Part shown: one piece after another, positions 2,330 through 21,721 of the stretch
Layout: every line of letters starts with the position of its first letter
How positions within the stretch are numbered: the stretch's first letter is position 1
DNA from: Eutreptiella sp. 'Long Island Sound 2002'
Lineage: Eukaryota; Protista; Euglenida
Length of the DNA stretch: 64,000 nucleotides
Assembly (NCBI GenBank): GCA_964036045.1
Contig: OZ038379.1
Location: 6,944,001-7,008,000 of the forward strand
Direction: 5' to 3'
Position numbers and translations under genes: made by a program
Notes under the pieces: model-generated
Told to the model about the DNA's origin: nothing
The model's input: the letters and a program-made list of their open reading frames with translations, nothing else
The model's database searches: none

Positions 2330-2542
2330 CACAAATGTGGACTGCAACTCCTCCCCAGTCTCCACAAGGTGGACCAGGAAATCCTCTGTAACAACCGCAA
2401 CCTCAGCTTTTCTGTGGGCTGCATTGTGCAAAGCGGTGCCAGCCCCGTTCTCGCACACCACCAAATGCGTCACCTCGGAGGTCAGCGTCCGGGCCACAGA
2501 CCAGCCACGACTCCCCAGTTCCTGTATAATAGAGGAAACGGT
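2330..2542 (-). pseudogene. BRCT-domain-like coding fragment (relic or orphan exon)
   Basis: IIQELGSRGWSVARTLTSEVTHLVVCENGAGTALHNAAHRKAEVAVVTEDFLVHLVETG fits the BRCT pattern (LG-G-V, VTHLVV, A...IVT..FL). In-frame TGA immediately upstream (2545-2543). Confidence 0.55.
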
Positions 2543-2884
2543 TCAATGGGCACAAGTGCAGCAGACCTAACCTCCTGCGGTCAACTGGATATCCCCGCCA
2601 TGGAGGCCGGTAGACACGGCGTAGATTGCAACCAACAGAAACGCCAGACTGCGTAATTCAACCCCTTTCAAGTTTGGGTGAAATGACGATAAGGTGGAGG
2701 ACCATTCACAGCAAGGTAAAACACCCTTTCAACACAGCAGCAGCTGATGCTGCAACAGACCAAGATATTCGACACCGGCCCGATCCAGTGTCTCATCCAG
2801 ATAGACTGTAGCGGTGTCAGAGAATACGCGGGATACCAATTCTGTTGAATTCTATTTTCGCAATTTTTGAAGGCCGCCAGAAAA

Positions 2885-3067
2885 CAGAAGACCGTGTTCA
2901 TTTATCTGCCGTTGTTTGTTTTTTTTGCCAACTGAATTTCTGCAATGGTCCTGGCGTCGCAAGATACTTCAATTTTCCTGTTTTTCCTTGGCGGCATTTT
3001 TGTGAAGTTAACCTTCCTGTGAAGGATGTTTGGGTGCCCTTCTCCTGTTCATAACAAGAAGTGCGGG
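2885..3067. repeat. 183-bp direct repeat, copy 2
   Basis: Near-identical to 1890-2072. Confidence 0.9.
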
Positions 3068-4439
3068 CCCTTGGACTATGGGATCGCACGCAGTCCATGC
3101 CACACACATAGGTTGGTTGAACTCGAGGAGTGCCATACACTTTCCAATCCGTTTTCGGGCACTTTCAATCTTGGTGTCACTCAAAGTCTTCATCGCTGCT
3201 GATGTGACAATGAGGCAAGCAAACCCTTCCACGTTAGAAGAGCCACAGGGTCCCACAACTGGGCAACAAGGGTGACTGCTGCAGGGCCAGCAGCAACATT
3301 CAAAATTCCAACAACCATGGCTCTACAGAAATCAGACAGAATGTCCAAATCTCCTCCAGCAGCAAAACGAAGGGCTGCAATGTCATGGGGCACAACGGAC
3401 CAACCAATACACTTGCTCCATCTGAACACAATGCGACATAAACAACCCAGCAATCAGGGTTTGTAGAATGACGTCTTCCAAAATTGCTCCCAGACCTCTT
3501 GGGATGCCCAAAACGAGTGTTTTCAGCCTGTTTTGAGGCCGTCCTGCCCTGTGTGGCCCCCGAACAGTCCCGAAACCCTTTGAAAACGGGCCATTTGGCG
3601 CCCATAAGTGCGTTAAAAATGGGGTCAACAACGGATTTTTCCAGAAATGATGGGGCTGTGTTGGTCCCATGTTCAGTCGGTTTTGCCATGTACGTATGGC
3701 ATGCCCATGTTTGAGGAGTCCCAGGGTGAATCCCCTCTATTTTGAAAATAGAGGGGTGGGGAATCCATTTTTGAAGATTTTGGGGCCTGTCCGTAAATCC
3801 TCTGCCCAGAGATTCCGATTTTGTATCATTTTTGCCATGTTTTCACCAACATCTGGCAAGGCTGCATCCCGGGCATCTTACAGGCCCGATTCCTTCAAAA
3901 TAGTGTCAATGGGAGGTCATATTCATTCAGAGTAGATTTGTTGCGTCTGATGTGTAGAAGCCATGTGCAAAGTGGCTCGACTCAACTCAACAATACTTGG
4001 CACAACCATCATGGGCACCCCCCATGGTGCTGCCAGTTCGCATCAGGCTGCACAGGGGTGTTAGTGTTCAGATTAGCCAACATATCATTGGGATGAGGGG
4101 AGCTACTTTGCACATGGCTTCTAAACATTAAAATGCAACCAATCCACCCTCAATGACTTGACCACTCACTGACAATATGTCGGAGGATTTGGGGGGGGGG
4201 GGGGGGGGAGCAAGGTCGAGACGCCGGGAGCTGAGCCAACAGCAGGTCGAAACCATGAAAAGTTCAAAATTGCGTCTTCGGTACTCAAAAATATGGCCTC
4301 AGGACCCCCCATGACGGATACCTCTTCGAATATCCCTTTTTTTTGGAGATTTCAGCCCCCCCCCCCCCCCCAGTGACAATAATCTTAAGCAATTCGGCCG
4401 AAAAATTGACAACCCGTTTTGTGGATTACCCCCTCCCGT

Positions 4440-4815
4440 TTCTACAACGCGTATTTCTGTGTTCTACAATGCACAGTATTGCCTACACTGCATATTTCGT
4501 TTTCTACAAAATGACATGACACACACTATAATTTCCACAATACGTAGTAAAGCGTTCTCCAACGCGCGATATATTTTCCACACGGCATATCAAATTTCAT
4601 GCAAAAATGTTACATTCTCTACAATGCGCATTCAATTGGCTACAATGCAGATTACATCTTCTACAACACACACTACATTTTCTTCGACATGCATTGACCT
4701 TTCTGCAACACACGCTACACTTTCGTTCGATTGTGTACCATTTCCACAACACGCCTTGCATTTTCTGCAGCACATGTCAACCACATTTTCTGCACTCCAC
4801 ATTGCAATTTCTGCA
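4440..4815. repeat. Degenerate AT-rich minisatellite (ttttctacaac/ctgcaac-like units)
   Basis: Recurring tttctacaa/tttctgcaa/tttccacaa motif at roughly 20-25 bp spacing. Confidence 0.55.
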
Positions 4816-6439
4816 ACGTGGTACAGCCTCAACTGCTGATGGTGCATACCTCGATCCACTCCTTGCGGGTCTTCTGCTTTGGATGCCCAGCAAAGATGAA
4901 GCCATATCCTGAATAAGACACAGTCAAGATGGCCATTGGTTTTGAGAGAAATACCATGACCGGAGATTCGTTGCTCTGGGATTGCTCACCAAGTAATGGG
5001 GCTAAACCACAGGAACTAGAGGAAAAGTGTGGTGCATAATTGTGTGTGTGTGGGAAATTGCCAAAAAGGCTCAGTAAATGTGCTGGTGAGTACTTCTGGG
5101 CGTATTGGTGGGTGAGAGTGTGTCAGTTGTCCATGTGATCACAAGGGGTGCTTCTGCCCCTGTGGCATCCCTGCCATGCTGGCGATGGCAACCTGTTCAT
5201 GAAGGCCCTCCCAAGACTGTGAAGATATAGAGGGGGCTCGCCACTACCACTGATGTGGCAAATGTAGCACCGGGCCAGGAGGTTCCGGGCCACTGAGTCT
5301 TCTGAGGGGGGAGAGGAGGGGAAAGGGGCACAGGAATTCGGGAACGATGGGTCATTGAGCCACCAAATATCCCGTCAGATATTACAGTCTGCATTACAAC
5401 AGCCCTCTGTCCTTCACTACAGCAACGAAGCAAGCAAGCAACAAGCAAGTCCACTGGCAGCTGTGTCAATCACCCCATCCCAACGCTGTGGGCTCAACTC
5501 TACTCCTGTCCCCTTATGCAACCACATGTGCCCTGCCCTGCCGTAACCTGCCCTGACCTGAACAATCGCTGTGGGCTCCAAATTGGGAAAACACCCTGTG
5601 GAAACCGTCCAGTTCGGCGACGTCCGTCCAGTCAAGTGTGCCCCAAACCGGCCACAGCGCAGATTTAGCGGTGAGTGTGCCACAGTTTCACTTCCCTTGC
5701 TGCGCCATTGAGGGTTGTTCCAGCCTCTACCTCCAAGACAACTCTGGGTCACGCCTCAATAACTGCCCCACGTGTCACAGGCCGCCCAACTTGTCCGATG
5801 GTGCCTCGAAGGCTCCTTGTGTTTGCAGTTGTTGCATCCAACAAAGGCGAATCTGCTAATTTGTGCTTGAATGCTGCACATTTGGGACTTTGGTGCCAAA
5901 ACTTCCGCCGTAGTTTTGTGGCATATGCCTGTGGCAGGCGTTTTTCTTTTGTCAAGTGCCTTGAGGTCCTCACATGCACAACTCCCAGCGATGGACTTGG
6001 ACACTTGTGCTTCTCCTTTTGCTTGATCTCACTTGGGGTTCCGCCCACTTCAGAGGGCAAGTCGCAGATGAAAAAACCAACCTTGTTCAGCGACTAGCCA
6101 CAAGTTCCAACTTTCAACACGGCTCCGCAGAGCGTGAGGCGACCTATTTCGCCACGGTGGACGATATCTTTGGCTGTATGGCTCGGAATCCGAATTTGAC
6201 GGCACGTACTCTGACCGCCACCACCCCCACTTTTTGCAATCTGGACCCTGTCCAGCGTGTCCCTAACCCCATCCCAATCGCTGGACATACCCTGCCCAAA
6301 TGACTCTCCAAAGGTGCCCCAACGCGGACCATTGGAGCTATATTCATGCGCCAAAGTGCACGCACAAGCGCATACATGCAAGCCTACCCGCACCTAGGCC
6401 GAACATGCACATCGCGCACTGATACCATTCAGGTGGGGC

Positions 6440-6720
6440 CCACGCGAACTCTGAGATCATGCTGCTGCTGGGCACTGTGCCGTGGTCCAGCAGATGAGCC
6501 ACGAAAGCCTCCGTGACGATCAGAATGTTGTTGTGCACTGCTTTGTCGTAAGCTTGGGTGGTGTGCCCTTTCTCACCACAGACCAAGTGGGTTACCTGCC
6601 AGGACATTGGGACGGAGGCTGTTGGAACGATTCCATCATCTGACATGGGCATGCAACTCAAAGATGTGGTACTTTCGTGTCCTCTCTACAGCTTCGTATA
6701 GTGCAATGAAAACGCATTTT
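6440..6720 (-). pseudogene. Second, disrupted BRCT-like fragment
   Basis: KKCVFIALYEAVERTRKYHIFELHAHVR*WNRSNSLRPNV, then a frameshift into VTHLVCGEKGHTTQAYDKAVHNNILIVTEAFVAHLLDHG. BRCT pattern that aligns loosely to the 2330-2542 copy, with one stop and one frameshift. Confidence 0.55.
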
Positions 6721-8012
6721 TTACGATGGCTGCTGGTAAAGAGGTTGCGGATAGGTGTTATTGCAACGCGTAGACACAGGTCATGCTTTTGCACTTCGCG
6801 CAGCACACGTCTGCGCTGTCCCCAGCATCCAGGGACGAATTTGGTGAAAATAACATAAAAAGAAGAGAAAGATGATGCACAAGCAACTTGCACCACCATG
6901 CATGGCAAATCTGTTTCAGAAATTTCGATTATTCCACTCTTGTGGCTCAAAACAGCCAAGCCCTTCAGGATCACAATGGCAAGGGTAGAATCCTGTGCCG
7001 ATAGCTGAACCCCCCCCTTGCCCGAAAAACAGCTGTCGAAAATTTCATTATTTTTCGGGCCCCGGCTTGACAACACCTTAGTCTCCTTTGGGCCATTGTC
7101 CTATGTAATAAGGTGGTGCTCATATCTAGACTCAACATTTACATAGCCACTGATATTGCATGCTCTGTGTGTTGCGTCTCCCCCAATTGTTGTGTCCGTG
7201 GTCAACAATGATGTCCTAGGTGCAAGCACTTCCATTTTGCAAACTTCGCTCAAGTTTGCATACCAACAATCCCAGATTCCAACATTGTGCCCAAATTTCC
7301 CATGCACAGTTTGGTGTCAAAGCACAAACCTCAATGTGATGACGCTCATGCACTGTACCTATTCTCAAGTGCCTGGCACCTTTTGGCCCAAGTGGGTGGA
7401 TGGCTAACACAAAATGTGCGGCATGTGTGTGATTGAGCATTCAAGCATTGTCTACATAGGCTTTGCAATGATGCATCTACACTCCATCTACCACATACAC
7501 ACACGAGCAAGAGGATAAATAATGGCCAAATGAGTCACACAAGGTAGCAACAAGGCCACTGCCTTGTCCAATTGGCAAGTCAAACACACACAACACTCAA
7601 ACAACACAATACCAACACAAAAAAAAGACAACACAAAACAAGAAAGCACAAAAGGTGGTAAGCATGCAACTTATTCTAGGACACCTACAAACCGCCACAA
7701 ATACCCAAACTCAACAAACAACAGACCACACAAAGAAATTACGCCTGCATAAAAAAAGGGCCAGCAACTATTAACTCCAACAGCTGGCGGGCAGGCTTGC
7801 GGCGGAATTGACCTAACGGCTGGCCACCACCAACAACACTATGTTGACATAGCCCAAAGAAAGACCGCCCATGTGGTTCAAGGTCATGCCCATGTTATAG
7901 CAGCCCCGCCCCCCCCAAAAAAATTGGGCATCTATCCTACCACACATTGCAACTGTGGAGTCTTTTGCATTGCAAGCTGGACAGGTTTTCATGAAAGTAA
8001 CCAAAAAAAGAG

Positions 8013-8927
8013 CAAATTCGTGCTTCTGCTTTGGGGAGCAAGCTCTTTCCTCGCTGTGTCTTTTTCCCAATCAGGGTCTTTGGTGGCTTCAACACAGAGC
8101 ACGAGGGCATCTGGTGGCCAAACGCGACTCCTTGAGTGTTGAACGGAATATTGAGAACGACTTGGAACTGTACACAAATGTGCAGTGCACATAAAAAAAG
8201 AGCATCCTCCAAGCATCCGTCCGACGCAACGACACAAACAACGTGCGCGAAACAAGCTTCACCTGCAAGGAACGAGTGGAAGCACGTCCTCGTCAGGAAT
8301 AGTCGACGTACGATGTGCGAAAGCCGTCGAAGAACTGCAGAGACGAATTCACGACCTTGTGGCGGCACTCTGAAGACAAAAACAACATTGTGGACTTCTC
8401 TGGCACTTGGTAGAGCTGGTGTTTTGTGTGCATTGCTGGATTCGGACCCCTTGGAGCTACATACTGGATGCAAACAAAAAAAGGATGCATTTGAACTGTG
8501 TTGAACTCTCCACTGTTTGAACACAAAGCAACACAAAAAAGGTAACGACACAAATTCGTGCTTCTGCTTTGGGGAGCAAGCTCTTTCCTCGCTGTGTCTT
8601 TTTCCCAATCAGGGTCTTTGGTGGCTTCAACACAGAGCACGAGGGCATCTGGTGGCCAAACGCGACTCCTTGAGTGTTGAACGGAATATTGAGAACGACT
8701 TGGAACTGTACACAAATGTGCAGTGCACATAAAAAAAGAGCATCCTCCAAGCATCCGTCCGACGCAACGACACAAACAATGTGCGCGAAACAATCTTCAC
8801 CTGCAAGGATTCGCGAGGCACGAATGGAAGCATGTCCTCGTCAGAAATAGTTGACGTATGACGTACGAAGCCGTCTCGTACGAAGCCGTCTAAGTGAGAG
8901 TTCGCGACCTCGTCGAGGCACTCTGAG
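8013..8927. repeat. Local direct duplication (8013-8271 and 8551-8809 near-identical; diverged homology extends to ~8373 and ~8927)
   Basis: caaattcgtgcttctgctttgggg...cacctgcaagga repeated at 538-bp period. Confidence 0.9.
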
Positions 8928-9615: not shown

Positions 9616-10932
9616 TGAACTAACAAGCGTAGCGTCATGACACAAGAACTTTTGCGGAGTAGCTGCGGAGTAGCGGCACGAGCAGACAATTGGGTTTACG
9701 GTGGGTGCAAAAGTATTGAAATGCCCTCCCTTTAGCATTTACAGCATGAGGGCAAACACCTACGTACTATGCAATTGAACTTTATGACACTTGCTACTAA
9801 CATCGGTGCTTGCACTCCATCATTTTGCGTTGATTCCAAAGCACAATATGCGGGTGAGACACATGCAGCCCATCCATATCCTCAAAGCTTCACGATGCGT
9901 GACACTCAGATGGTTTATGTTCATCCTTGCTTCAAGAGACAAATACAAAACCTTAAGGCTCCCAATTAGGAGGTGTGTTCAAATTCACCCGGATAGTACA
10001 TGGAAGGGTGAATTGTACAACACAATGCAAAGCAAGCGAGCAGCGCTCAAAAGCTCAAAGACATGGAACTCGATATAGACAGCAAAATGCGGTGCCCCAT
10101 GTGCTGCTGGTCTCAACACCAATAATCTGATGGGGGGCACGGTACAAAAGGGATTGAAAACAGGAAAATGGACGACCCTTGGACGTCTCAGTTTGAATGG
10201 CATCGCATCTATACCATAAACAATTTGTCATTTGGGGCACGCCAACTCTTCGGCAATCGCGAAGTCTCCCGAGGCAGAAGGAATACCTTCTCGAGCCTTC
10301 CGTAGGATGGGATCAAAATTTTACCCGCGCCCGCAAGGGTCGGCCAAAACCAAAACCAAACAAAACCAAAATTTGGTGCCACGCACAGGTTAGCAGCTGC
10401 TACAAGCGGAAAAGTAAGGATGCGGGCTTCAATGGGGGAGAGCTGATGAAAATGTTCTCAAATAAAATGCATCCGGGCTGCACCCGTGACAAGTGGTAAA
10501 AGAGCCTTCTCCGTTCTCAAATTGTGCAATGCCAGTAAGGGAAACCACTTCAAGTGATAGCGACATCCACACGATGCAAGCCAATCCACCCTCCACCATT
10601 GAGTGCAAAAAGTCCAAGATATCGCACTTTTGATGCCAATTCAAACGAAAGCGGATGGTTCGCCGCTGCTGTGCATAGCGCATGACGTCGTGCCTGCAAA
10701 ATCGTTCAAAAACCCAGTTCAGCCGCAAACGGTGGTCACTAGCGAAAAAACATGAACACGACTCTCCAATACGGCCATGTGGTTGGTCGGCATGGCAAAT
10801 CCCTGCTCTGGCACTCCCGGGAACCTAGTGACTTGGGAGGGAATGGGCCCAATTGTGGTGGTAGCTCACGTGTTCCCTTTGCAAGATTTTGTCCTTCATG
10901 CAAAACGGAAAATCTTTGAATCTTTGAATTGA
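9616..10932 (+). repeat. Left arm of a large inverted repeat; carries the empty target of the YR retrotransposon at 9951-9958
   Basis: Reverse complement of 12979-14015 joined to 19307-19646. The ORF track gives identical translations on opposite strands (10197-10499 vs 13472-13774; 9985-10203 vs 13768-13986). About 60 bp present in the right arm (~13071-13130) are missing here. Confidence 0.92.
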
Positions 10933-12978: not shown

Positions 12979-14015
12979 TCAATTCAAAGATTCAAAGATT
13001 TTCCGTTTTGCATGAAGGACAAAATCTTGCAAAGGGAACACGTGAGCTACAACCACAATTGGGCCCATTCTCTCCGTATGTCCCCATGGCCGTACCAAGA
13101 GGACGCAAAAGTTTCGCCGAGTCGCTTCTTCCTCCCAAGTCACTAGGTTCCCGGGGAGTGCTAGAGCAGGGATTTGCCATGCCGACCAACCACATGGCCG
13201 TATTGGAGAGTCGTGTTCATATTTTTTCACTAGTGACCACCGTTTGCGGCTGAACTGGGTTTTTGAACGATTTTGCAGGCACGACGTCATGCGCTATGCA
13301 CAGCAGCGGCGAACCATCCGCTTTCGTTTGAATTGGCATCAAAAGTGCGATATCTTGGACTTTTGCACTCAATGGTGGAGGGTGGATTGGCTTGCATTGT
13401 GTGGATGTCGCTATCACTTGAAGTGGTTTCCCTTACTGGCATTGCACAATTTGAGAACGGAGAAGGCTCTTTTACCACTTGTCACGGGTGCAGCCCGGAT
13501 GCATTTTATTTGAGAACATTTTCATCAGCTCTCCCCCATTGAAGCCCGCATCCTTACTTTTCCGCTTGTAGCAGCTGCTAACCTGTGCGTGGCACCAAAT
13601 TTTGGTTTTGTTTGGTTTTGGTTTTGGCCGACCCTTGCGGGCGCGGGTAAAATTTTGATCCCATCCTACGGAAGGCTCGAGAAGGTATTCCTTCTGCCTC
13701 GGGAGACTTCGCGATTGCCGAAGAGTTGGCGTGCCCCAAATGACAAATTGTTTATGGTATAGATGCGATGCCATTCAAACTGAGACGTCCAAGGGTCGTC
13801 CATTTTCCTGTTTTCAATCCCTTTTGTACCGTGCCCCCCATCAGATTATTGGTGTTGAGACCAGCAGCACATGGGGCACCGCATTTTGCTGTCTATATCG
13901 AGTTCCATGTCTTTGAGCTTTTGAGCGCTGCTCGCTTGCTTTGCATTGTGTTGTACAATTCACCCTTCCATGTACTATCCGGGTGAATTTGAACACACCT
14001 CCTAATTGGGAGCCT
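12979..14015 (-). repeat. Right arm of the large inverted repeat, part 1 (up to the retrotransposon insertion)
   Basis: Reverse complement of ~9956-10932. Confidence 0.92.
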
Positions 14016-14084
14016 CGTGTTTTGTGCTTGCTCAAAACACGGGTTTAACTTAATTACCTCTTCATTAGGCATTTGTCAGTTTGT
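14016..14084 (+). repeat. Split direct repeat A1 (left terminus)
   Basis: 69 bp, 2 mismatches to A2 at 18790-18858. Confidence 0.92.
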
Positions 14085-14096
14085 TCCCTTTTTGCC

Positions 14097-14954
14097 ATGT
14101 CTGGGCTTCACGGGAGCAGTGGGATGCAAGAGGACGCAATTTTTGTGTCCGACGATTCACACGCGGAATCGGGTACGGCCAAGGAATTGGCCGAGTTGAA
14201 GGCCATGCTCCGTCGACAGGATGCGGAGGTGGAGCGCTTGAGGGTACAATTAGCCGCCACGGAGATTGAAAAGCGCAAGGACACGGAAATCCCGGACCTC
14301 AACTTGGATGGGATAGAGGAGTTTTTGAAGAAGGAAAGAGTCACGGTTTGGATGAAGGATGCATGTGCGGTATTAAAGAAGTATGTGACGGCGGTTCCGA
14401 AGCCGAGTAGGCCAGCAGACGTGGGAGGTAAGCAAGGAGAACAATTAAGTCTCGGAGATGCGTTGGCGTACAGAATGTGGAAAGTCCTCATTGTTGCACA
14501 TGCGACTTACGTGAAGAGGTATTCGCCGGGACAAGCATCGGGGCCCAAAGGAAAGTCGGAAAATTTTGATGAGGCCATGGCGAGTGGCGGGGATTCCTGG
14601 AGATATATAACTGCTAAGATCTGTTCACATAGACGCGTACGTGTTGAAATCTCAACACGTACGCGTTGGTTTTTTCTTTGTTGGAAATTTGTCATTTTTC
14701 ATGCAAAATTCATGTGTGGGGTATCACCTTACCCAACCCAACCCCTCTTTGCCCTTTCCCTACACCACTGGGTGCCACTGCAAACATTGCCGACCGTAGG
14801 TCGCCTTCTCCCTCTGCAGAGTGTCCCGAAAACCATACTGAATTTCCCAAAACAAGAGTATTCAATTCAAGAAACGGGACGGGGTAGCCTACTGGTTATC
14901 CAAGGCCGGAGACTGGATACCGGTGGACGCACAACCCAGCGAAGATTGCCGTAG
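14097..14954 (+). CDS. Putative gag-like ORF1 of the YR retrotransposon
   Basis: First ATG after A1. Predicted coiled-coil (ELAELKAMLRRQDAEVERLRVQLAATEIEK) followed by a helical region. Position matches ORF1 of this element class. The 3' third (after ~14600) looks less protein-like. Confidence 0.55.
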   Translation: MSGLHGSSGMQEDAIFVSDDSHAESGTAKELAELKAMLRRQDAEVERLRVQLAATEIEKRKDTEIPDLNLDGIEEFLKKERVTVWMKDACAVLKKYVTAVPKPSRPADVGGKQGEQLSLGDALAYRMWKVLIVAHATYVKRYSPGQASGPKGKSENFDEAMASGGDSWRYITAKICSHRRVRVEISTRTRWFFLCWKFVIFHAKFMCGVSPYPTQPLFALSLHHWVPLQTLPTVGRLLPLQSVPKTILNFPKQEYSIQETGRGSLLVIQGRRLDTGGRTTQRRLP

Positions 14955-15021
14955 ATGCACGGCGGCGGGAAAGCTGGAGAACTTGCGGTACTGGTGTTTC
15001 CGGTGCCCATTGTGGTCGTGA

Positions 15022-16740
15022 CGAGAAAACCCGTGGCGGTATCGGGATGCCGTCGCGGGGATCGAACCACCGGGAGAGCAGAGGCCGACGTACCGGTGGT
15101 TGGCGCTTGAGTTTGAGTCGCACCGACGTGAGGAAGAACCCACAACACCTGTGGGTGTTGCAATTCGGGGTTGGAAGCCGTCTACGACGGCTGGATACGC
15201 GTCCAGTTTGCGAAGGTTGGGAGACCTTGAGGAATCCTTGGGAGAAGAGGGCAACTTGCCTTCCATCCTATCTCGGAAACTCGCTCAGCACGTTCAAAAT
15301 GGTGGCAGCTCAAGTGGGGCGAGAGGCATCATCTCGGTAGTGCGGGCTTGTGAAGACCTCCAAATGGCTGCAGGGGTCGTCAAACCACTGCATTGGCGGC
15401 TTGCTAAAGCGGGGGCCCAAGCGGGAGTCCAAGAATATGCAAGTCCTGTACTGCTGCGTCATTTGGTGGATAGAACGACTTCGGATGGCGAAAGGGCGGT
15501 CGTGGCAATGGCCCTGGTGTCATATGTTTGTTTTCTTAGAGTGGCGGAGGCTGCTAGCGTACGTGTTGGGGATGTACGTGACAGCAGTTATTTGGTTTTT
15601 TGGAATAGTAAGACAGGACATGAAGGGTGGCAGAGGAGGCCGGTGCCTCCTTGGGTCAGGCCGTTTGTTGAGTGGCTTCACGACTGGGCTGAGGGACGAG
15701 GGTGCGCCAGGGACGACTTGCTCTTTCCTGCAGGGGCTCCTCAGCTCGAGAAAACAATGGCGGACTTGGTGCGTGGGACGGCATGGTCCCGACATCGGTG
15801 GCACTGTTTCCGACGTGGAGGAGCTGCAGCGTGCTGGAAGAGAGGACCGGCCCTGCCTCATTTTAAATGGTGGGGCAGATGGGCAGCAACGGCGACGGCA
15901 ATGGCGTATGCGCTTGGGTACCGAGATGAAGAGGTTGTGGCCCCGCTTTGTCTACCACAGGTTTGGGGTTCCGTATCAGCGGCAGCTTTCGCGGATCCGC
16001 AGCAAGTATGGGGAGACATCATGTTCGATGAGCGGCATCAGGACAAAAACCGGCCGGTGTGGGGCCGGAGCGAGCGACGCCGAGCAGCGCCCAGTATGTT
16101 CAGGGGTAAGAGATTTGCAGGGGAACCGAGATCTGATGCGGCAGACTTGGGCAGTTCATCGGAGGACACGGGATCAGGAGTATCGGCCGATGATGGGCCG
16201 AGTGTGCGTTCGGGTGTCCGGAGGACTGCAGAGGTTGTTCCAGCGCCAGAGGCAAGAAGGAGTTCAAGAGCAGGACCGACGATGGGGAGGCCAGGTGTCG
16301 CTGAGCGGGGACTTGCGGGTCCTGCCGGTCCACTCCCCAGCGGGGGATCGGATGCCAGCGATGCAGCGAGTGCTGGGCAGCAAGTGCCCGGCAATGGAGG
16401 AGAGAGGGCAAAGTTCAGATTCACGGCGCCGCCGCCGGGACGACCAAAGGCGCCAACGAAGTCGGGGCCATGGCGGTCAGCCGCTGAGCCTGCCCGAGGG
16501 CACCGAGGAGTCAAGCGTACGGTGGGTGGCAGAGCCCTTTCAGTACCAGCAGGCCGGAAGGGTGGCGCGGCGGTGGCGGTGGCGACGCCTTCAACGAGAC
16601 GCCCGGTTACCACAAGGGTGGCGGGAGCTACACGACGACCGCGGCACAGCGATGGAGAGTCCGGACCGGGACGGAAGCGATCCAGGACTCTACCCAGTGG
16701 AGCCGGCAGCACCAGGGGGGGGGCTCGCCAGCAACGGTGA
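15022..16740 (+). CDS. Tyrosine recombinase (ORF2)
   Basis: Catalytic set present: R (FLRVAEA), K (FWNSKTG), HxxR (HCFRRGG), W (KWWGRW), Y (MAYA). Frame is open from 15022 after a TGA at 15019-15021. The tail after ~16000 is low-complexity and overlaps ORF3. Confidence 0.9.
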   Translation, partial: RENPWRYRDAVAGIEPPGEQRPTYRWLALEFESHRREEEPTTPVGVAIRGWKPSTTAGYASSLRRLGDLEESLGEEGNLPSILSRKLAQHVQNGGSSSGARGIISVVRACEDLQMAAGVVKPLHWRLAKAGAQAGVQEYASPVLLRHLVDRTTSDGERAVVAMALVSYVCFLRVAEAASVRVGDVRDSSYLVFWNSKTGHEGWQRRPVPPWVRPFVEWLHDWAEGRGCARDDLLFPAGAPQLEKTMADLVRGTAWSRHRWHCFRRGGAAACWKRGPALPHFKWWGRWAATATAMAYALGYRDEEVVAPLCLPQVWGSVSAAAFADPQQVWGDIMFDERHQDKNRPVWGRSERRRAAPSMFRGKRFAGEPRSDAADLGSSSEDTGSGVSADDGPSVRSGVRRTAEVVPAPEARRSSRAGPTMGRPGVAERGLAGPAGPLPSGGSDASDAASAGQQVPGNGGERAKFRFTAPPPGRPKAPTKSGPWRSAAEPARGHRGVKRTVGGRALSVPAGRKGGAAVAVATPSTRRPVTTRVAGATRRPRHSDGESGPGRKRSRTLPSGAGSTRGGARQQR

Positions 16741-18679
16741 CCAGCCCCTGGGCTCCCCCTTGAGAGTGCCTGGGATTCTGGGGGGTTGGGTGGGCGCGGA
16801 GGCTGGCCTGCATCTTAAAGGTGGAATTCTCCTGACCATCATGGCTGTGCTGACCCAACACTTCTGGTGGCTCAAGTGTAGGCTACAGTGTGCAGTAGGG
16901 GTTCTGGTGCGTCGTCTGTGGATACTGTTGAATCGCATTATTTCTGTTTGTGAGGACTTTCGGTTGGATGAGCCACTGGGGATTTGCCTGATGGCAGTAC
17001 AGTACCTCTCGCCAGGGGTTTGGGATTCTGTTAATCACCTCTCCACCTCTCCCAAGCCTAGGGAAGCGAAGGTCACCCCGGAGATTTTGGAGGCTGGTAT
17101 AGGTAATGTGGGGTGCTATGCGATGTCTGAAGCGGAATGGGATGCTGCGGTGCCCCCGGAGTTTTTGGAATTCATGAGAACTTTTGATCTGCGGGAGGCT
17201 GACAGGGGAAATGGGAGGGTGCGAGCAACGGTGAGTGGAATGACGGACGCCATTCGAAGGACTGGTGTTTTACATGATGAATCACCCTCTCTACCGCCAA
17301 CCTGTTTTCCTTTTGTAATACCCAAAAATGATATTAAGCGCTCCTTGATTTTAAGTTGCGTGGGTATTCACAGGGGATTGCATCTCAAGCCACCAAAGTT
17401 TTCACTAGCGTCTTGGGAGGGAATAGGTAGATGGATGGCGGAGCAGCCGGCTGGGGTGGAACTGTACGGTACTCATATCGACCTCTCTAATGCCTTCTGG
17501 TCGTTCCTGTTACCCAGAAAAGCGAGGCGAATTTTCCGCTTCTTTACCCACCAGAAGGGGGGGCTCGTGTCGCTGGACCGCCTCCCGTTTGGGTGGGCCT
17601 TTTCGCCCTATCTGTGTCAGGAGATATTGGGGCGGGTGGTGGGAGATGCAGTGCCGGATGGGGTCTTTTTGGTGCATTACTTGGATGACTTTATTTTGTT
17701 ATCCAGCGACAAACCCCTGCTTGGGACAACCACGAGTCACTTGAAAGATCGTATCGTGCGGGCGGGATTCTTGGTTAGTGCTAAGAGCACACTGAGCCCC
17801 GTCCAGAAGCTACAGGCCTTGGGGAAGGTGGTTGATTTGAAAGAACGTTCCATCCAAGTGCAGCCTTTTGTGTTCCTCCAGTTCCTGGTTGCGTGGTTGC
17901 GACTGGCCACGGGGGCGTACTCGAAGCGGCGGCTGGACAAGCTGCTGGGTACCCTGCAGTGGCATTTAGGGCCACGACGCGGGTTTTCAGGGGTGCTCGC
18001 AGGAGCGTATGCCTGGTCGAGATTTGGACCGGAAAGGGCGCCAGCCACCCCTGTTAAAGTGTTGGAGGGATTGGCGACAGCAATTGCGCGCATAGGCCAG
18101 AAGTGGAGACCGCTGTCGGAGTCGCGCATGCGAAGGGTACGGCAGCTGGGAGGTTGGTGCCTCTCTGAAAGGCCGGCATCTAGAGGCGATTTGTTTGGGG
18201 CTGTGATATTGGTGGATGCCGCCAAAGACGGTGTTTGCTACAGGGTGGGTGGTGTGTTGCCTGCTAACCAGTCTGTGCGAACATGGGTATGCCCGGACGG
18301 ACCCTGTAACCAGCAGGTGGCGGAGCTCATGGGCATAGCGTGGGCGGTGAGATTGGCGGTGCGGTTGGGTTGGAAGGTTTTCACTGTCTTCGCCGACAGT
18401 ATGGTGGGCATTGCTCAGGTGAGGGGTTTGAAGGCAGCATCCCATCTGCGTACCCAGTTGCGTGTGTTGCGCGCACTGACGTGGGTGCTGTATAACACAG
18501 GAGTGATAGTACGTCTAATTTGGGTGCCGTCAGAGCTTCATCCTGCCGATCCAATGAGTCGAGTGGACATGGATTTCGGGGGGCGGGTGCACCAAGCTGA
18601 GTTGGAGGCGTGGGAGAGATGGCGAGTATTGCAGAAGTATCCTGAACTCTGCTGGGTGCAAGGCCTAGCTTATGTATGA
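15350..18679 (+). CDS. Reverse transcriptase-RNase H (ORF3); catalytic core ~17150-18679
   Basis: RT motifs FPFVIPKND, HIDLSNAFW, RLPFGWAFSP, HYLDDFIL, LQALGKVVD. RNase H motifs LVDAAKDG, QVAELMG, FADSMV, WVPSELHPADPMSR. No internal stops. True start uncertain. Confidence 0.93.
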   Translation: MKTSKWLQGSSNHCIGGLLKRGPKRESKNMQVLYCCVIWWIERLRMAKGRSWQWPWCHMFVFLEWRRLLAYVLGMYVTAVIWFFGIVRQDMKGGRGGRCLLGSGRLLSGFTTGLRDEGAPGTTCSFLQGLLSSRKQWRTWCVGRHGPDIGGTVSDVEELQRAGREDRPCLILNGGADGQQRRRQWRMRLGTEMKRLWPRFVYHRFGVPYQRQLSRIRSKYGETSCSMSGIRTKTGRCGAGASDAEQRPVCSGVRDLQGNRDLMRQTWAVHRRTRDQEYRPMMGRVCVRVSGGLQRLFQRQRQEGVQEQDRRWGGQVSLSGDLRVLPVHSPAGDRMPAMQRVLGSKCPAMEERGQSSDSRRRRRDDQRRQRSRGHGGQPLSLPEGTEESSVRWVAEPFQYQQAGRVARRWRWRRLQRDARLPQGWRELHDDRGTAMESPDRDGSDPGLYPVEPAAPGGGLASNGDQPLGSPLRVPGILGGWVGAEAGLHLKGGILLTIMAVLTQHFWWLKCRLQCAVGVLVRRLWILLNRIISVCEDFRLDEPLGICLMAVQYLSPGVWDSVNHLSTSPKPREAKVTPEILEAGIGNVGCYAMSEAEWDAAVPPEFLEFMRTFDLREADRGNGRVRATVSGMTDAIRRTGVLHDESPSLPPTCFPFVIPKNDIKRSLILSCVGIHRGLHLKPPKFSLASWEGIGRWMAEQPAGVELYGTHIDLSNAFWSFLLPRKARRIFRFFTHQKGGLVSLDRLPFGWAFSPYLCQEILGRVVGDAVPDGVFLVHYLDDFILLSSDKPLLGTTTSHLKDRIVRAGFLVSAKSTLSPVQKLQALGKVVDLKERSIQVQPFVFLQFLVAWLRLATGAYSKRRLDKLLGTLQWHLGPRRGFSGVLAGAYAWSRFGPERAPATPVKVLEGLATAIARIGQKWRPLSESRMRRVRQLGGWCLSERPASRGDLFGAVILVDAAKDGVCYRVGGVLPANQSVRTWVCPDGPCNQQVAELMGIAWAVRLAVRLGWKVFTVFADSMVGIAQVRGLKAASHLRTQLRVLRALTWVLYNTGVIVRLIWVPSELHPADPMSRVDMDFGGRVHQAELEAWERWRVLQKYPELCWVQGLAYV

Positions 18680-18730
18680 CGCCCACCTGGGTCGCGCCGC
18701 GGGTGTCAGAAGCCAGCCTGGTAAAGCTTT

Positions 18731-18858
18731 CCAGTGAGCCGAGGCAAGCATTGTTTAGTATTGTTTCGTGCATGCACTAGGGTTAAACTCGTGTTTTGAG
18801 CTTGCTCAAAACACTGGTTTAACTTAATTACCTCTTCATTAGGCATTTGTCAGTTTGT
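18731..18858 (+). repeat. Internal B1-A2 junction (copy of right end fused to left end)
   Basis: B1 18731-18789 is identical to B2 19248-19306 and is followed immediately by A2 (18790-18858), which matches A1. Confidence 0.93.
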
Positions 18859-19247
18859 CCCCCCCCCCCCACCCCCTGCCACTAATCGGGGCGGGTTTCT
18901 GCCACACTTCATAGCTGTTTTGTGGAGTGGGAGCGGTGGGATGTCCAGCTTAAGAGCGACAGTAGTGGGCGCAGGGGGGGGGTTTGAAGGTGAGAGGGTG
19001 GCCTGCTCTGACCCCACCCACCCACCCCCTGCCGCGATTGAGTTACATCCGCGCATGACCAGCTATGATGGGCAGGGACGGGGCACTGTATGTTGAATGT
19101 ATCTTTGCTTTCGTCGGCGGGACATGACAGAATACGCGGGTGAGTGAGTGCGTGAACGTGTGGGTATTGGTCGGGTCCCCTGCGGGGAGGCGAACGCTGT
19201 CGGTCACAACGATGTTATACTGGCCACTACGGTGGCAACTGAACAGG

Positions 19248-19306
19248 CCAGTGAGCCGAGGCAAGCATTGTTTAGTATTGTTTCGTGCATGCACTAGGGT
19301 TAAACT
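19248..19306 (+). repeat. Split direct repeat B2 (right terminus)
   Basis: 59 bp identical to 18731-18789. Confidence 0.93.
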
Positions 19307-19646
19307 TAAGGTTTTGTATTTGTCTCTTGAAGCAAGGATGAACATAAACCATCTGAGTGTCACGCATCATGAAGCTTTGAGGACATGGATGGGCTGCATG
19401 TGTCTCACCCGCATATTGTGCTTTGGAATCAACGCAAAATGATGGAGTGCAAGCACCGATGTTAGTAGCAAGTGTCATAAAGTTCAATTGCATAGTACGT
19501 AGGTGTTTGCCCTCATGCTGTAAATGCTAAAGGGAGGGCATTTCAATACTTTTGCACCCACCGTAAACCCAATTGTCTGCTCGTGCCGCTACTCCGCAGC
19601 TACTCCGCAAAAGTTCTTGTGTCATGACGCTACGCTTGTTAGTTCA
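19307..19646 (-). repeat. Right arm of the large inverted repeat, part 2 (after the insertion)
   Basis: Reverse complement of ~9616-9955; resumes at taaggttttgtatttg exactly where part 1 broke off. Confidence 0.92.
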
Positions 19647-19826
19647 CAAAATCATTGTTTTCCATTATTTAAATTATGTATTATGTATGTTCATGTATTA
19701 CATATTATTCATTTCGTTTATTTACATGTAAAACGTGCAAGTAACCCGTTTTACCGGCACGAAAACGGGCTATTAACCCGTTTTTCTCGGCCATGTAACC
19801 CGTTTTACTGCCGAAAAAATAGGTGC

Positions 19827-20399
19827 TGTTTCTATTTTGTTTTTGGTTGCAAAGGCAATGCCATAGACTCCGGGTACCATGGACGCATCCCTACAACCCT
19901 TGGACTCGAGTCCGGAGACTCCACCCCAATAGGCTATGGTCCGACAGTCCAATCCCCCATCGTCCTCAGCATATGTATGCCTTGCAACAGAAGACATATT
20001 AAGGATGACTCTATGTATCTGGCATATTCATCACCAAGACCATGTCTTATGTGACTGCACTACATTTGGTACCGAATTCAAGTAGGTTTGAAATAAATAC
20101 GGTCCCTACTTACTGTGGCATGGACAAGGGCGTGGCTATGACAAAGGCGAGGGGTACCTTGTTTGACACAGCCACCTACCATGAGCTACTGCATCACTAC
20201 TACGGAAACCTACTATGGAAAGGCACACAAACGGTGTTGTTTCTATTTTGTTCCTAGTTGCAAAGGCAATGCCTCAGACTCCGGGTACCATGGACGCATC
20301 CCTACAACCCTTGGACTCGAGTCCGGAGACTCCACCCCAATAGGCTATGGTTCGACAGTCCAATCCCCCATCGTCCTCAGCATATGTTTGCCTTGCAAC
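19827..20399. repeat. 162-bp direct repeats (19827-19988 and 20238-20399) flanking a 249-bp unique core
   Basis: tgtttctattttgtt...gactccgggtaccatggacgcatccctacaaccc...ccttgcaac repeated at 411-bp period. Confidence 0.88.
20086..20233 (+). pseudogene. Possible M1-type (gluzincin) metallopeptidase exon fragment
   Basis: FEINTVPTYCGMDKGVAMTKARGTLFDTATYHELLHHYYGNLLW resembles the M1 pattern GxME...HExxHxxxGNL. AG at 20084-20085 and GT at 20234-20235. Short and isolated. Confidence 0.35.
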
Positions 20400-20786
20400 G
20401 CCAAGCGCAGGGAGCAAAAATTCAGAAGTGGTCCCCAACAAAGGGGAGCAAAATCAGAAGTGGCTACCTCACCCCTGCCTTCTCGGGGGCCAAAAAGGGG
20501 GCGGAAATGCTATGGTGCCCCTGCATTCTCGGGGATCCCCAACGCCAAGCGCGGGGAGCAAAAATTCAGAAGTGGTCACCAACAAAGGGGAACAAAATCA
20601 GAAGTGGCTACCTCACCCCTGCCTTCTCGGGGGCCCAAAAGAGGGCGGGTATGCTTTGTCACCCCATTCTCGGGGATCCCCAACACCAAGCGCGGGGAGC
20701 AAAAATTCAGAAGTGGTCCCCAATAAAGTAGAACTAAATCAGAAGTGGCTACCTCACCCCTGCCTTCATGGGGGCCCAAAAGAGGG
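20397..20786. repeat. ~143-bp tandem satellite, about 2.7 copies
   Basis: aacgccaagcgc.gggagcaaaaattcagaagtggtccccaacaaaggggagcaaaatcagaagtggctacctcacccctgccttctcggggg units at 20397, 20541 and 20682. Confidence 0.9.
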
Positions 20787-21721
20787 TGACGTATTCTTTG
20801 TGGCGTTTTGGCGACATTCTCGAATCCCCTCGTAATTCCATTTGAGTCCACACGGGCAAGGGAATGGTGACACAAGTGGGCGGTCAGGTTCACGCAAGCC
20901 GGGGGTCAGAACCCGCTCCCCAGTCGCCACGTGTGAAACCGAAACAGGGCATTCCCGCAGACATACAAATGAACCCACGAGGCACACGCAGAGCGTTGCT
21001 AAAGGGTGGGGCTGAGCTGTGCGGGGGGGACCCCAACCCCGCAGAGGATTGTGAGGCCTTTGTCTTCACATGGGACGGGGCACAACAAACCCGACTGAAA
21101 CCCCCCGTTCCCAGAAGACCAACAAATGCCATACTACTGCAGCTGTACATTGGGGGGGGGGGGGGGTGGCAGGACAGGGCAGACAGGGGACTAGGGCCCG
21201 AACCCACTCCCATGTCCCATCTCCACCCGCGCTTCTTATTGCCATCCCTGACCGTCCTTGTCGGCCAATGGACAATGCGGCCCAATCACTTACCGGGGGC
21301 TTTGGGGGGGGTGTTAGATCCCCCCCACCCCACCCCCCACCCGCGAGATGTTGAGTTGTGAAGCAAAATTCTGGGCACCCGCCTAAAATGGTAAAAAAAA
21401 ATCAACCAATTGAAGACAGCCTTTGACGAAGGTGTGGGGGTCTGTAAAGGGGGGACGGGGTGCGGACGTACTCCGCGGCCGCCATCTCCATCGTGGCTAA
21501 GCGCCAGTGAACATCAAAGCCCAGAGGAACCCACGCCCACGGCAGGTATTCGTCTCCGCAAAGCACGGGGTCTCTGGGGCTGAGGTGATCGTACAGTCGA
21601 CGTGCTCCAGGACCCCTACAAGCTGCCCCATGACTGCCAAGCGGTGGATACCGATGCCTTCGACTTCATCCAGCGTCATCTCAAAGCACGACCAACCCTA
21701 GGTGCACCCGGGGGGCCTCTA

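Follow-up and report, generated by a model that had tools for sequence, protein, structure and literature searches.

In a 64,000-nucleotide stretch of contig OZ038379.1 (positions 6,944,001 to 7,008,000; hereafter the window), a tyrosine recombinase (YR) retrotransposon stands together with an uninterrupted copy of its target and an internal junction of its own end repeats. We propose, with a probability of about 0.72, that this DIRS-order, VIPER/TATE-like element of a probably euglenozoan genome inserted once, and conservatively, into one of the two arms of an inverted repeat that is present in many copies. The joined ends of the element (...GGGTTAAAC|TCGTG..., kept internally where repeat B1 meets repeat A2) would have recombined with a target reading [A/T]-C-N, and the exchange would fall at a single C assignable to neither element nor target, so that host bases would be neither duplicated nor lost, and the filled inverted-repeat unit would later have been copied at least 18 times by segmental duplication. 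That the identity covers two nucleotides at the window site would then be owed to chance, its target having C-T, the combination that is also favoured.

Junctions, empty site and flanks across the family

The element and the host repeat that it interrupts are arranged in the window as follows.

14014..19306, plus strand: YR retrotransposon, 5293 bp including the ambiguous C(T) at each end
14014..14088, plus strand: A1 repeat, starting CTCGTG and holding the hairpin arm GCTCAAAACACGGGTTTAAC; its 3' limit is marked by loose ends of contigs at 14088
18731..18789, plus strand: B1 repeat (direct-repeat search)
18788..18862, plus strand: A2 repeat, overlapping B1 at the C(T) of 18788-18789, the template of the circle junction
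19248..19306, plus strand: B2 repeat, ending ...GGGTTAAAC(T)
9616..10821, minus strand: left arm of the host inverted repeat, the empty target; the shared C is 9957 and CT is 9957-9956
13151..14013, plus strand: right arm, inner portion, flanking the insertion on its left (inverted-repeat search)
19307..19646, plus strand: right arm, outer portion, flanking the insertion on its right (inverted-repeat search)

The repeats form a split direct pair (A1...B1A2...B2), with A1 and A2 matching at 72 of 75 positions and B1 and B2 at 59 of 59. A four-way alignment, like the sequence read directly, reproduced the four junction and empty-site strings at the positions given in an earlier note on this DNA: the left junction is gggagc-CT-cgtgtttt (CT at 14014-15), the right junction ggttaaa-CT-taaggtttt (19305-06) and the internal B1/A2 junction ggttaaa-CT-cgtgtttt (18788-89), while the uninterrupted target GGGAGCCTTAAGGTTTT occupies 9947-9963 of the minus strand (one exact match in the window against 0 expected from 100 shuffles). 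The natural target of the element is GGGAGCCTTAAGG. As that note had recognized, the filled, empty and internal junctions are related exactly as the substrates and products of one conservative crossover.

The geometry of the host repeat allows the accounting to be done base by base. The element splits the right arm of a 1.2-kb inverted repeat, leaving it in two pieces (13151-14015 and 19305-19646), and the left arm (9616-10821) is continuous and keeps the uninterrupted site. Left-arm segment 9956-10610 corresponds to 13361-14015 over 655 nt with 1 mismatch by direct count (the repeat finder gave 100%), and segment 9616-9957 to 19305-19646 over 342 nt at 99% (2 mismatches). These two left-arm segments share exactly 2 nt, 9956-9957, and hence no host base was replaced and none was duplicated beyond the ambiguous CT.

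The second filled/empty pair (C3:124275913/124280991) reads AAAT-C[element]C-ATTCA and belongs to a 20-bp satellite. In each of the 43 uninterrupted units found, a single base separates AAAT from ATTCA, usually A and sometimes C or G. Here the identity extends over one position, and again nothing was duplicated or deleted, the end C being either derived from the target or indistinguishable from the target's own. The satellite, with the unit CGGAGGTATGAAAT[A/C/G]ATTCA, forms several arrays (C3:66.47-66.60 Mb, C3:113.32 Mb, C3:124.28-124.46 Mb) and is found elsewhere as well.

Independent insertions, 96-98% identical to the window copy and set in different flanks, give a wider view of the ends; their flanks were read from the output of genome pattern searches and counted by hand. 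Among the fetched loci there are 8 distinct sites, in which the left end is always CT-CGTG and the right end is TTAAA-CT in 3, TTAAA-CA in 4 and TTAAA-CG in 1. When the search pattern did not fix the two bases ahead of CGTG, 47 of 51 distinct left ends had CT there, none of the other 4 having C followed by a base other than T. The base preceding the left CT, at 75 sites, is T in 38, A in 29, C in 8 and G in 0 (enrichment of A/T, P about 1e-16 against window composition). At the right end the sequence ...TTAAAC is kept at all but 2 sites, and the base that follows its C at 39 independent sites is T in 18, A in 10, G in 6 and C in 5, so that T reaches 46% against a background of 22% (P 5e-4 against window composition). 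The target preference is thus [A/T]-C-[T]. No repeated flank, that is, no target-site duplication (TSD), was seen in the two filled/empty comparisons or in about 75 left and 39 right flanks, which agrees with the earlier note's view of integration without one. Genome patterns for a swapped or longer overlap (right ends continuing TCGT..., left ends lacking CGT) gave only point-mutated copies, and there is accordingly no sign of a longer heteroduplex overlap, which would be expected to put target bases into the start of A, and element bases past the end of B, in roughly half of the copies.

Copies, proteins and known relatives

The copies that share the flanks of the window element tell of its amplification. 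In the 2.28 Gb of genome searched, loci L001-L019 carry copies about 100% identical to the window element, between identical left and right flanks. A 30-mer across the empty site occurs 36 times in the assembly, mostly on the same contig at 4.7-16.2 Mb; in 18 of the 36 cases a filled arm stands at a distance of about 4.07 kb, just as it does in the window, and both arms are empty in at least 3 inverted-repeat units (C2:4674544/4678580 is one). The filled copies, near-identical and at least 18 in number, are one insertion event, the unit having then been multiplied by segmental duplication. Such copies with identical flanks are not independent evidence on integration. The number of events was overstated in the earlier note. 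With its 1.2-kb arms and 2.3-kb spacer, the host inverted repeat itself belongs to a large repeated unit on C2 at about 4.67-16.2 Mb, a range that includes the window; near the window the copies of this unit are 158-256 kb apart, and most have the element in the same arm.

Two further loci depart from the usual structure. The independent copy L026 (C12:58866743-58871270) stops at B1 and passes into host DNA (TTAAA-CA-tcacc) without the segment from A2 to B2, the structure expected as a product of B1 x B2 recombination. L033 (assembly ERZ25074135; the same insertion as C15:24509805) was considered as a third filled/empty pair and rejected: its element lacks B2, and there is no normal right junction for it in the genome. 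Within its positions 2380-8900, the element gives way to a second copy, 1.4 kb long, of its own left flank, and this copy runs into new sequence (ggat-CT-gaggtg); the locus resembles a tandem join of a filled with an empty allele by haplotype mis-joining, or else a real rearrangement or aberrant copy.

Public runs (under two organism labels, together with estuary metagenomes) were examined as contigs. The right junction appears in three of them as a loose end at 9957, and at the left junction one contig spans 14015 by 40 nt; over the empty site the best contigs reach 29 nt on one side, just short of the bridging criterion. Some metatranscriptome runs hold part of the stretch.

The coding part of the element consists of a gag-like open reading frame (ORF), then the YR, then the reverse transcriptase (RT) and RNase H.

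14073..14954, plus strand: gag-like ORF1, its C-terminal part displaced here by a 247-bp insert
14605..14851, plus strand: 247-bp secondary insertion, a separate high-copy repeat, missing in genome matches (query 593-838); contig joint 14604>14852
15100..16740, plus strand: tyrosine recombinase ORF; the folded part is residues 1-290 and the tail is of low complexity
16952..18679, plus strand: RT and RNase H-like domains within a long frame (15350-18679); RVT_1 E 1.4e-12, RVT_3 E 0.0019
18782..18823, plus strand: junction hairpin (repeat search and folding)

The RVT_3 (RNase H-like) match is below threshold, ORF1 has no Pfam match, and the Pfam scan found no rve or other integrase match in any ORF of the element. 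The YR ORF scores 15.5-17.1 bits against Pfam Phage_integrase (PF00589; E 0.005-0.015), below the cut-off of 27.1, which its best homologue (23.2 bits) does not reach either; searches of the PDB, by single sequence and by profile, and of NCBIfam gave no match. Membership therefore rests on fold and motifs. A profile search recovered 377 homologues, 41 of which were aligned; R147, K171, H235 and R238 are at least 90% conserved across these 41, whose consensus contains WGRW.S...A..Y, and the present protein has the GRW...Y motif. The AlphaFold2 (AF2) model built on this alignment has a mean predicted local distance difference test score (pLDDT) of 92.1 and a predicted template modeling score (pTM) of 0.80, and it replaced a model from 10 close homologues with a pLDDT of 38.7. 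Foldseek returned 65 PDB matches at E<=0.001 covering both domains, with Cre, XerA, IntI and lambda Int in the lead (TM scores 0.64-0.68); together with Tn1549 Int these matches have TM scores of 0.6-0.68 and E values of about 1e-6. On the model, then, the ORF is a tyrosine recombinase with a predicted two-domain Cre/Int-like fold and the catalytic R-K-H-R-(W)-Y set.

With RT/RNase H and a YR, and without a DDE integrase, the element is a genuine DIRS-order retrotransposon, and its earlier identification as a YR retrotransposon with split direct repeats is borne out by the repeats, the recombinase fold and the RT domain. It is VIPER/TATE-like by ORF order and split repeats, an assignment set by family description and not by phylogeny. 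The Atlas clusters that come closest to the RT belong to Euglenozoa, and all homologues recovered are unnamed ENA proteins. More distant families (L031, L032, L034) have RTs 31-44% identical and no clearly readable split repeats.

In Ngaro and PAT-like elements the YR lies downstream of RT/RNase H, whereas here it lies upstream. Their architecture, A1-[ORFs]-B1A2-B2, is the same (PMC8547959, PMC4157794). The kinetoplastid VIPER/TATE elements are alike in the order gag-like, YR, RT/RNase H and, probably, in host phylum, and the VIPERs of T. cruzi and C. fasciculata have split direct repeats (A1...B1A2B2) as this element does (PMC6681497). The repeats are much shorter here (75 bp for A and 59 bp for B, compared with 136-414 and 219-308 bp), and the host is probably a euglenid rather than a kinetoplastid. 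Target sites and junction identity are not described for VIPER in that paper, in which the term 'target site' does not occur (PMC6681497).

A precedent for the crossover itself is found in Dictyostelium DIRS-1 and its relatives, which likewise combine a YR with RT/RNase H and specify their joined ends by an internal sequence. In the model for DIRS1-like elements a 3-bp sequence at the circle junction recombines with an identical genomic sequence without TSD (PMC3266345; PMC7192593, citing Goodwin & Poulter 2001). Crossover on a short identity without TSD was thus already published, and the earlier note overstated its novelty. The starting and ending trinucleotides of DIRS1-like elements sometimes differ at one base (PMC3266345, Table 3), which is comparable to CT against CA here. 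In contrast to the split direct repeats of this element, which has no methyltransferase domain, DIRS1-like elements have inverted terminal repeats along with an internal complementary region (ICR), and as a rule carry a methyltransferase domain; the sequence shared there is 3 bp long (NTT), against one invariant base here. Neither the one-base requirement with A/T before the C nor a junction hairpin was found described in the literature examined.

The junction hairpin and alternative explanations

At the B1/A2 junction GTTAAAC, which makes up the last 7 nt of B, is complementary to the internal A sequence GTTTAAC, while the start of A, over 13 nt, forms a stem with the adjoining GCTCAAAACAC. 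The resulting hairpin (-13.6 kcal/mol, z -5.35, equalled by 0 of 200 shuffles) needs the junction of B with A to be complete, and the crossover point C|T sits exactly between its two stems. It could be a double-stranded binding site, or an ICR-like splint that joins the ends of linear single-stranded complementary DNA (cDNA). Mini elements of 108-146 bp that have both the left and the right end of the element occur at several loci, with A followed directly by B in two cases; their short A+B form recalls SIRE of T. cruzi, which has been equated with the A2-B2 region of VIPER (PMC6681497). Their approximate positions are given below.

C1:36969704-36969840, mini element
C1:39777610-39777755, mini element
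C2:189450315-189450460, mini element
C1:199367194-199367322, mini element
C7:29840264-29840403, mini element
C7:71084439-71084568, mini element
C19:15741934-15742041, mini element

An alternative route would run through a folded single strand. The sequence GCTCAAAACAC(N)GGTTTAAC inside A would splint both termini of a single-stranded cDNA, so that the ...GTTAAAC 3' end and the TCGTG... 5' end abut at C|T, and either the nick would be sealed or the hairpin itself would be the substrate of the YR, as in integron attC or CTX phage. We consider this route unlikely, for all that the break between the two stems coincides with the point of exchange, that mini elements at several loci with A before B keep the whole structure without B1A2, that the intermediate observed for DIRS-1 is a single-stranded linear cDNA (PMC7192593), and that IntI is among the structural matches; the IntI match is no better than that to Cre, the mini elements could be what deletions have left behind, a recombinase site may just as well contain a palindrome as its double-stranded binding site, and the related subfamily L033 has an identical hairpin sequence, which offers no covariation to draw on. 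In its fullest form, which we likewise hold unlikely, the first 36 nt of A would be a built-in splint, able to pair both with the element's last 7 nt and with their own first 13 nt, like the ICR of DIRS-1; linear single-stranded cDNA would close exactly at C|T or offer the folded hairpin to the recombinase, B1A2 would serve only to restore the ends, and the A+B mini elements of about 135 bp, as analogues of SIRE, would be mobilised without B1A2. If true, this would bring split-direct-repeat and ICR elements under one mechanism and provide an origin for SIRE.

The other alternatives concern the identity of the core and the history of the two arms. The earlier note had proposed a CT crossover core, and an obligatory 2-bp CT common to circle junction and target, with the exchange inside it, is what the four junctions of the window site would suggest by themselves, as would the excess of T after the right-end C and the 3 of 8 fetched sites with CT at both ends. 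The C of that core is near-invariant; the T is not, since 54% of right ends have A, G or C in its place, a proportion too high for post-insertion mutation to be a likely cause, and the satellite target has no CT. Moreover, a 2-nt heteroduplex would leave target bases at the left end in about half of mismatched cases, against the 47 of 51 left ends with CT. The note had named copies without CT at their junctions as evidence against its core, and for the T the right ends of other copies are such evidence; we hold an obligatory CT core to be very unlikely. That the empty arm is not ancestral, and was produced by precise YR excision or gene conversion from a once-filled arm, appears distinctly unlikely: conservative recombination is reversible, excision would restore exactly the empty sequence, and the 99.7-100% identity of the arms suggests ongoing homogenisation, but homogenisation would tend to copy or remove the element in both arms, units with both arms empty exist, and all filled units have the same arm filled and the empty arm equidistant, which fits one insertion followed by duplication. 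Extremely improbable, finally, is an assembly artefact such as mis-joined haplotypes giving a false filled/empty pair. The region is highly repetitive, and L033, from another assembly, resembles filled and empty alleles in tandem; however, the geometry is consistent over the 36 empty sites and at least 18 filled units, both filled junctions occur in contigs of the two organism labels and of metagenomes, and the conclusions on the junctions are independent of the linkage between the arms.

We thus return to a single conservative insertion at one shared C as the preferred reading, and from the junctions and flanks, the recombinase fold and the RT domain, all of which are observed, we infer a circular intermediate, catalysis by the encoded YR, and insertion rather than excision as the direction of the event. 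Several points weigh against it. The public runs are contig-only, no circle, cDNA or recombinase activity was observed, and an internal B1A2 junction in reads is indistinguishable from a circle junction. Filled/empty comparisons number only two, the exact pre-insertion unit of the satellite having been deduced, and the flank surveys, made with restricted patterns, do not cover every copy. The predicted protein resembles Cre, lambda Int, XerA and IntI in fold over both domains and in the catalytic R-K-H-R-(W)-Y set, but sequence similarity is below family thresholds, and these well-studied YRs act on overlaps of 6-8 bp between inverted binding sites; a one-base identity is far below this, and the chemistry may therefore differ from that of Cre or lambda Int. 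Lastly, the commonest target base before the C is T, whereas the element has A there, so homology alone does not explain the choice of target.

Secondary features and significance

The 247-bp insertion in ORF1 is a small mobile repeat. It is missing from older copies and from some same-flank copies, in which ORF1 is 233 aa; the public contigs carry the site both with and without it, and also show it in unrelated flanks, the contig word depth of its bins being several-fold over that of the adjoining element bins. A perfect 15-bp stem lies within it (about 14633-14666), and GT..AG ends are absent; should the host be a euglenid, the repeat may be intron-like. Three loci with the same right flank (L013-L015, for example C2:6643908-6648588) begin only at position 613 of the element, within the insert's palindrome, which suggests rearrangement at that hairpin. 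To the right of the inverted repeat, window positions 19822-20399 and 20396-20806 hold direct repeats, in which 167 nt occur twice at 411-bp spacing, with tandem units of about 126-141 nt.

To our knowledge, the integration of a YR retrotransposon has never been reconstituted, and filled/empty comparisons at the level of single bases are scarce. The locus is a clean example of such a pair in a lineage, probably euglenid, in which these elements were, as far as known, undescribed, and it supplies defined recombination substrates in the junction TTAAAC|TCGTG and the natural target. The result refines the published model for DIRS1-like elements and does not change it: a single base of identity can be enough, with a preference for [A/T]-C-[T].

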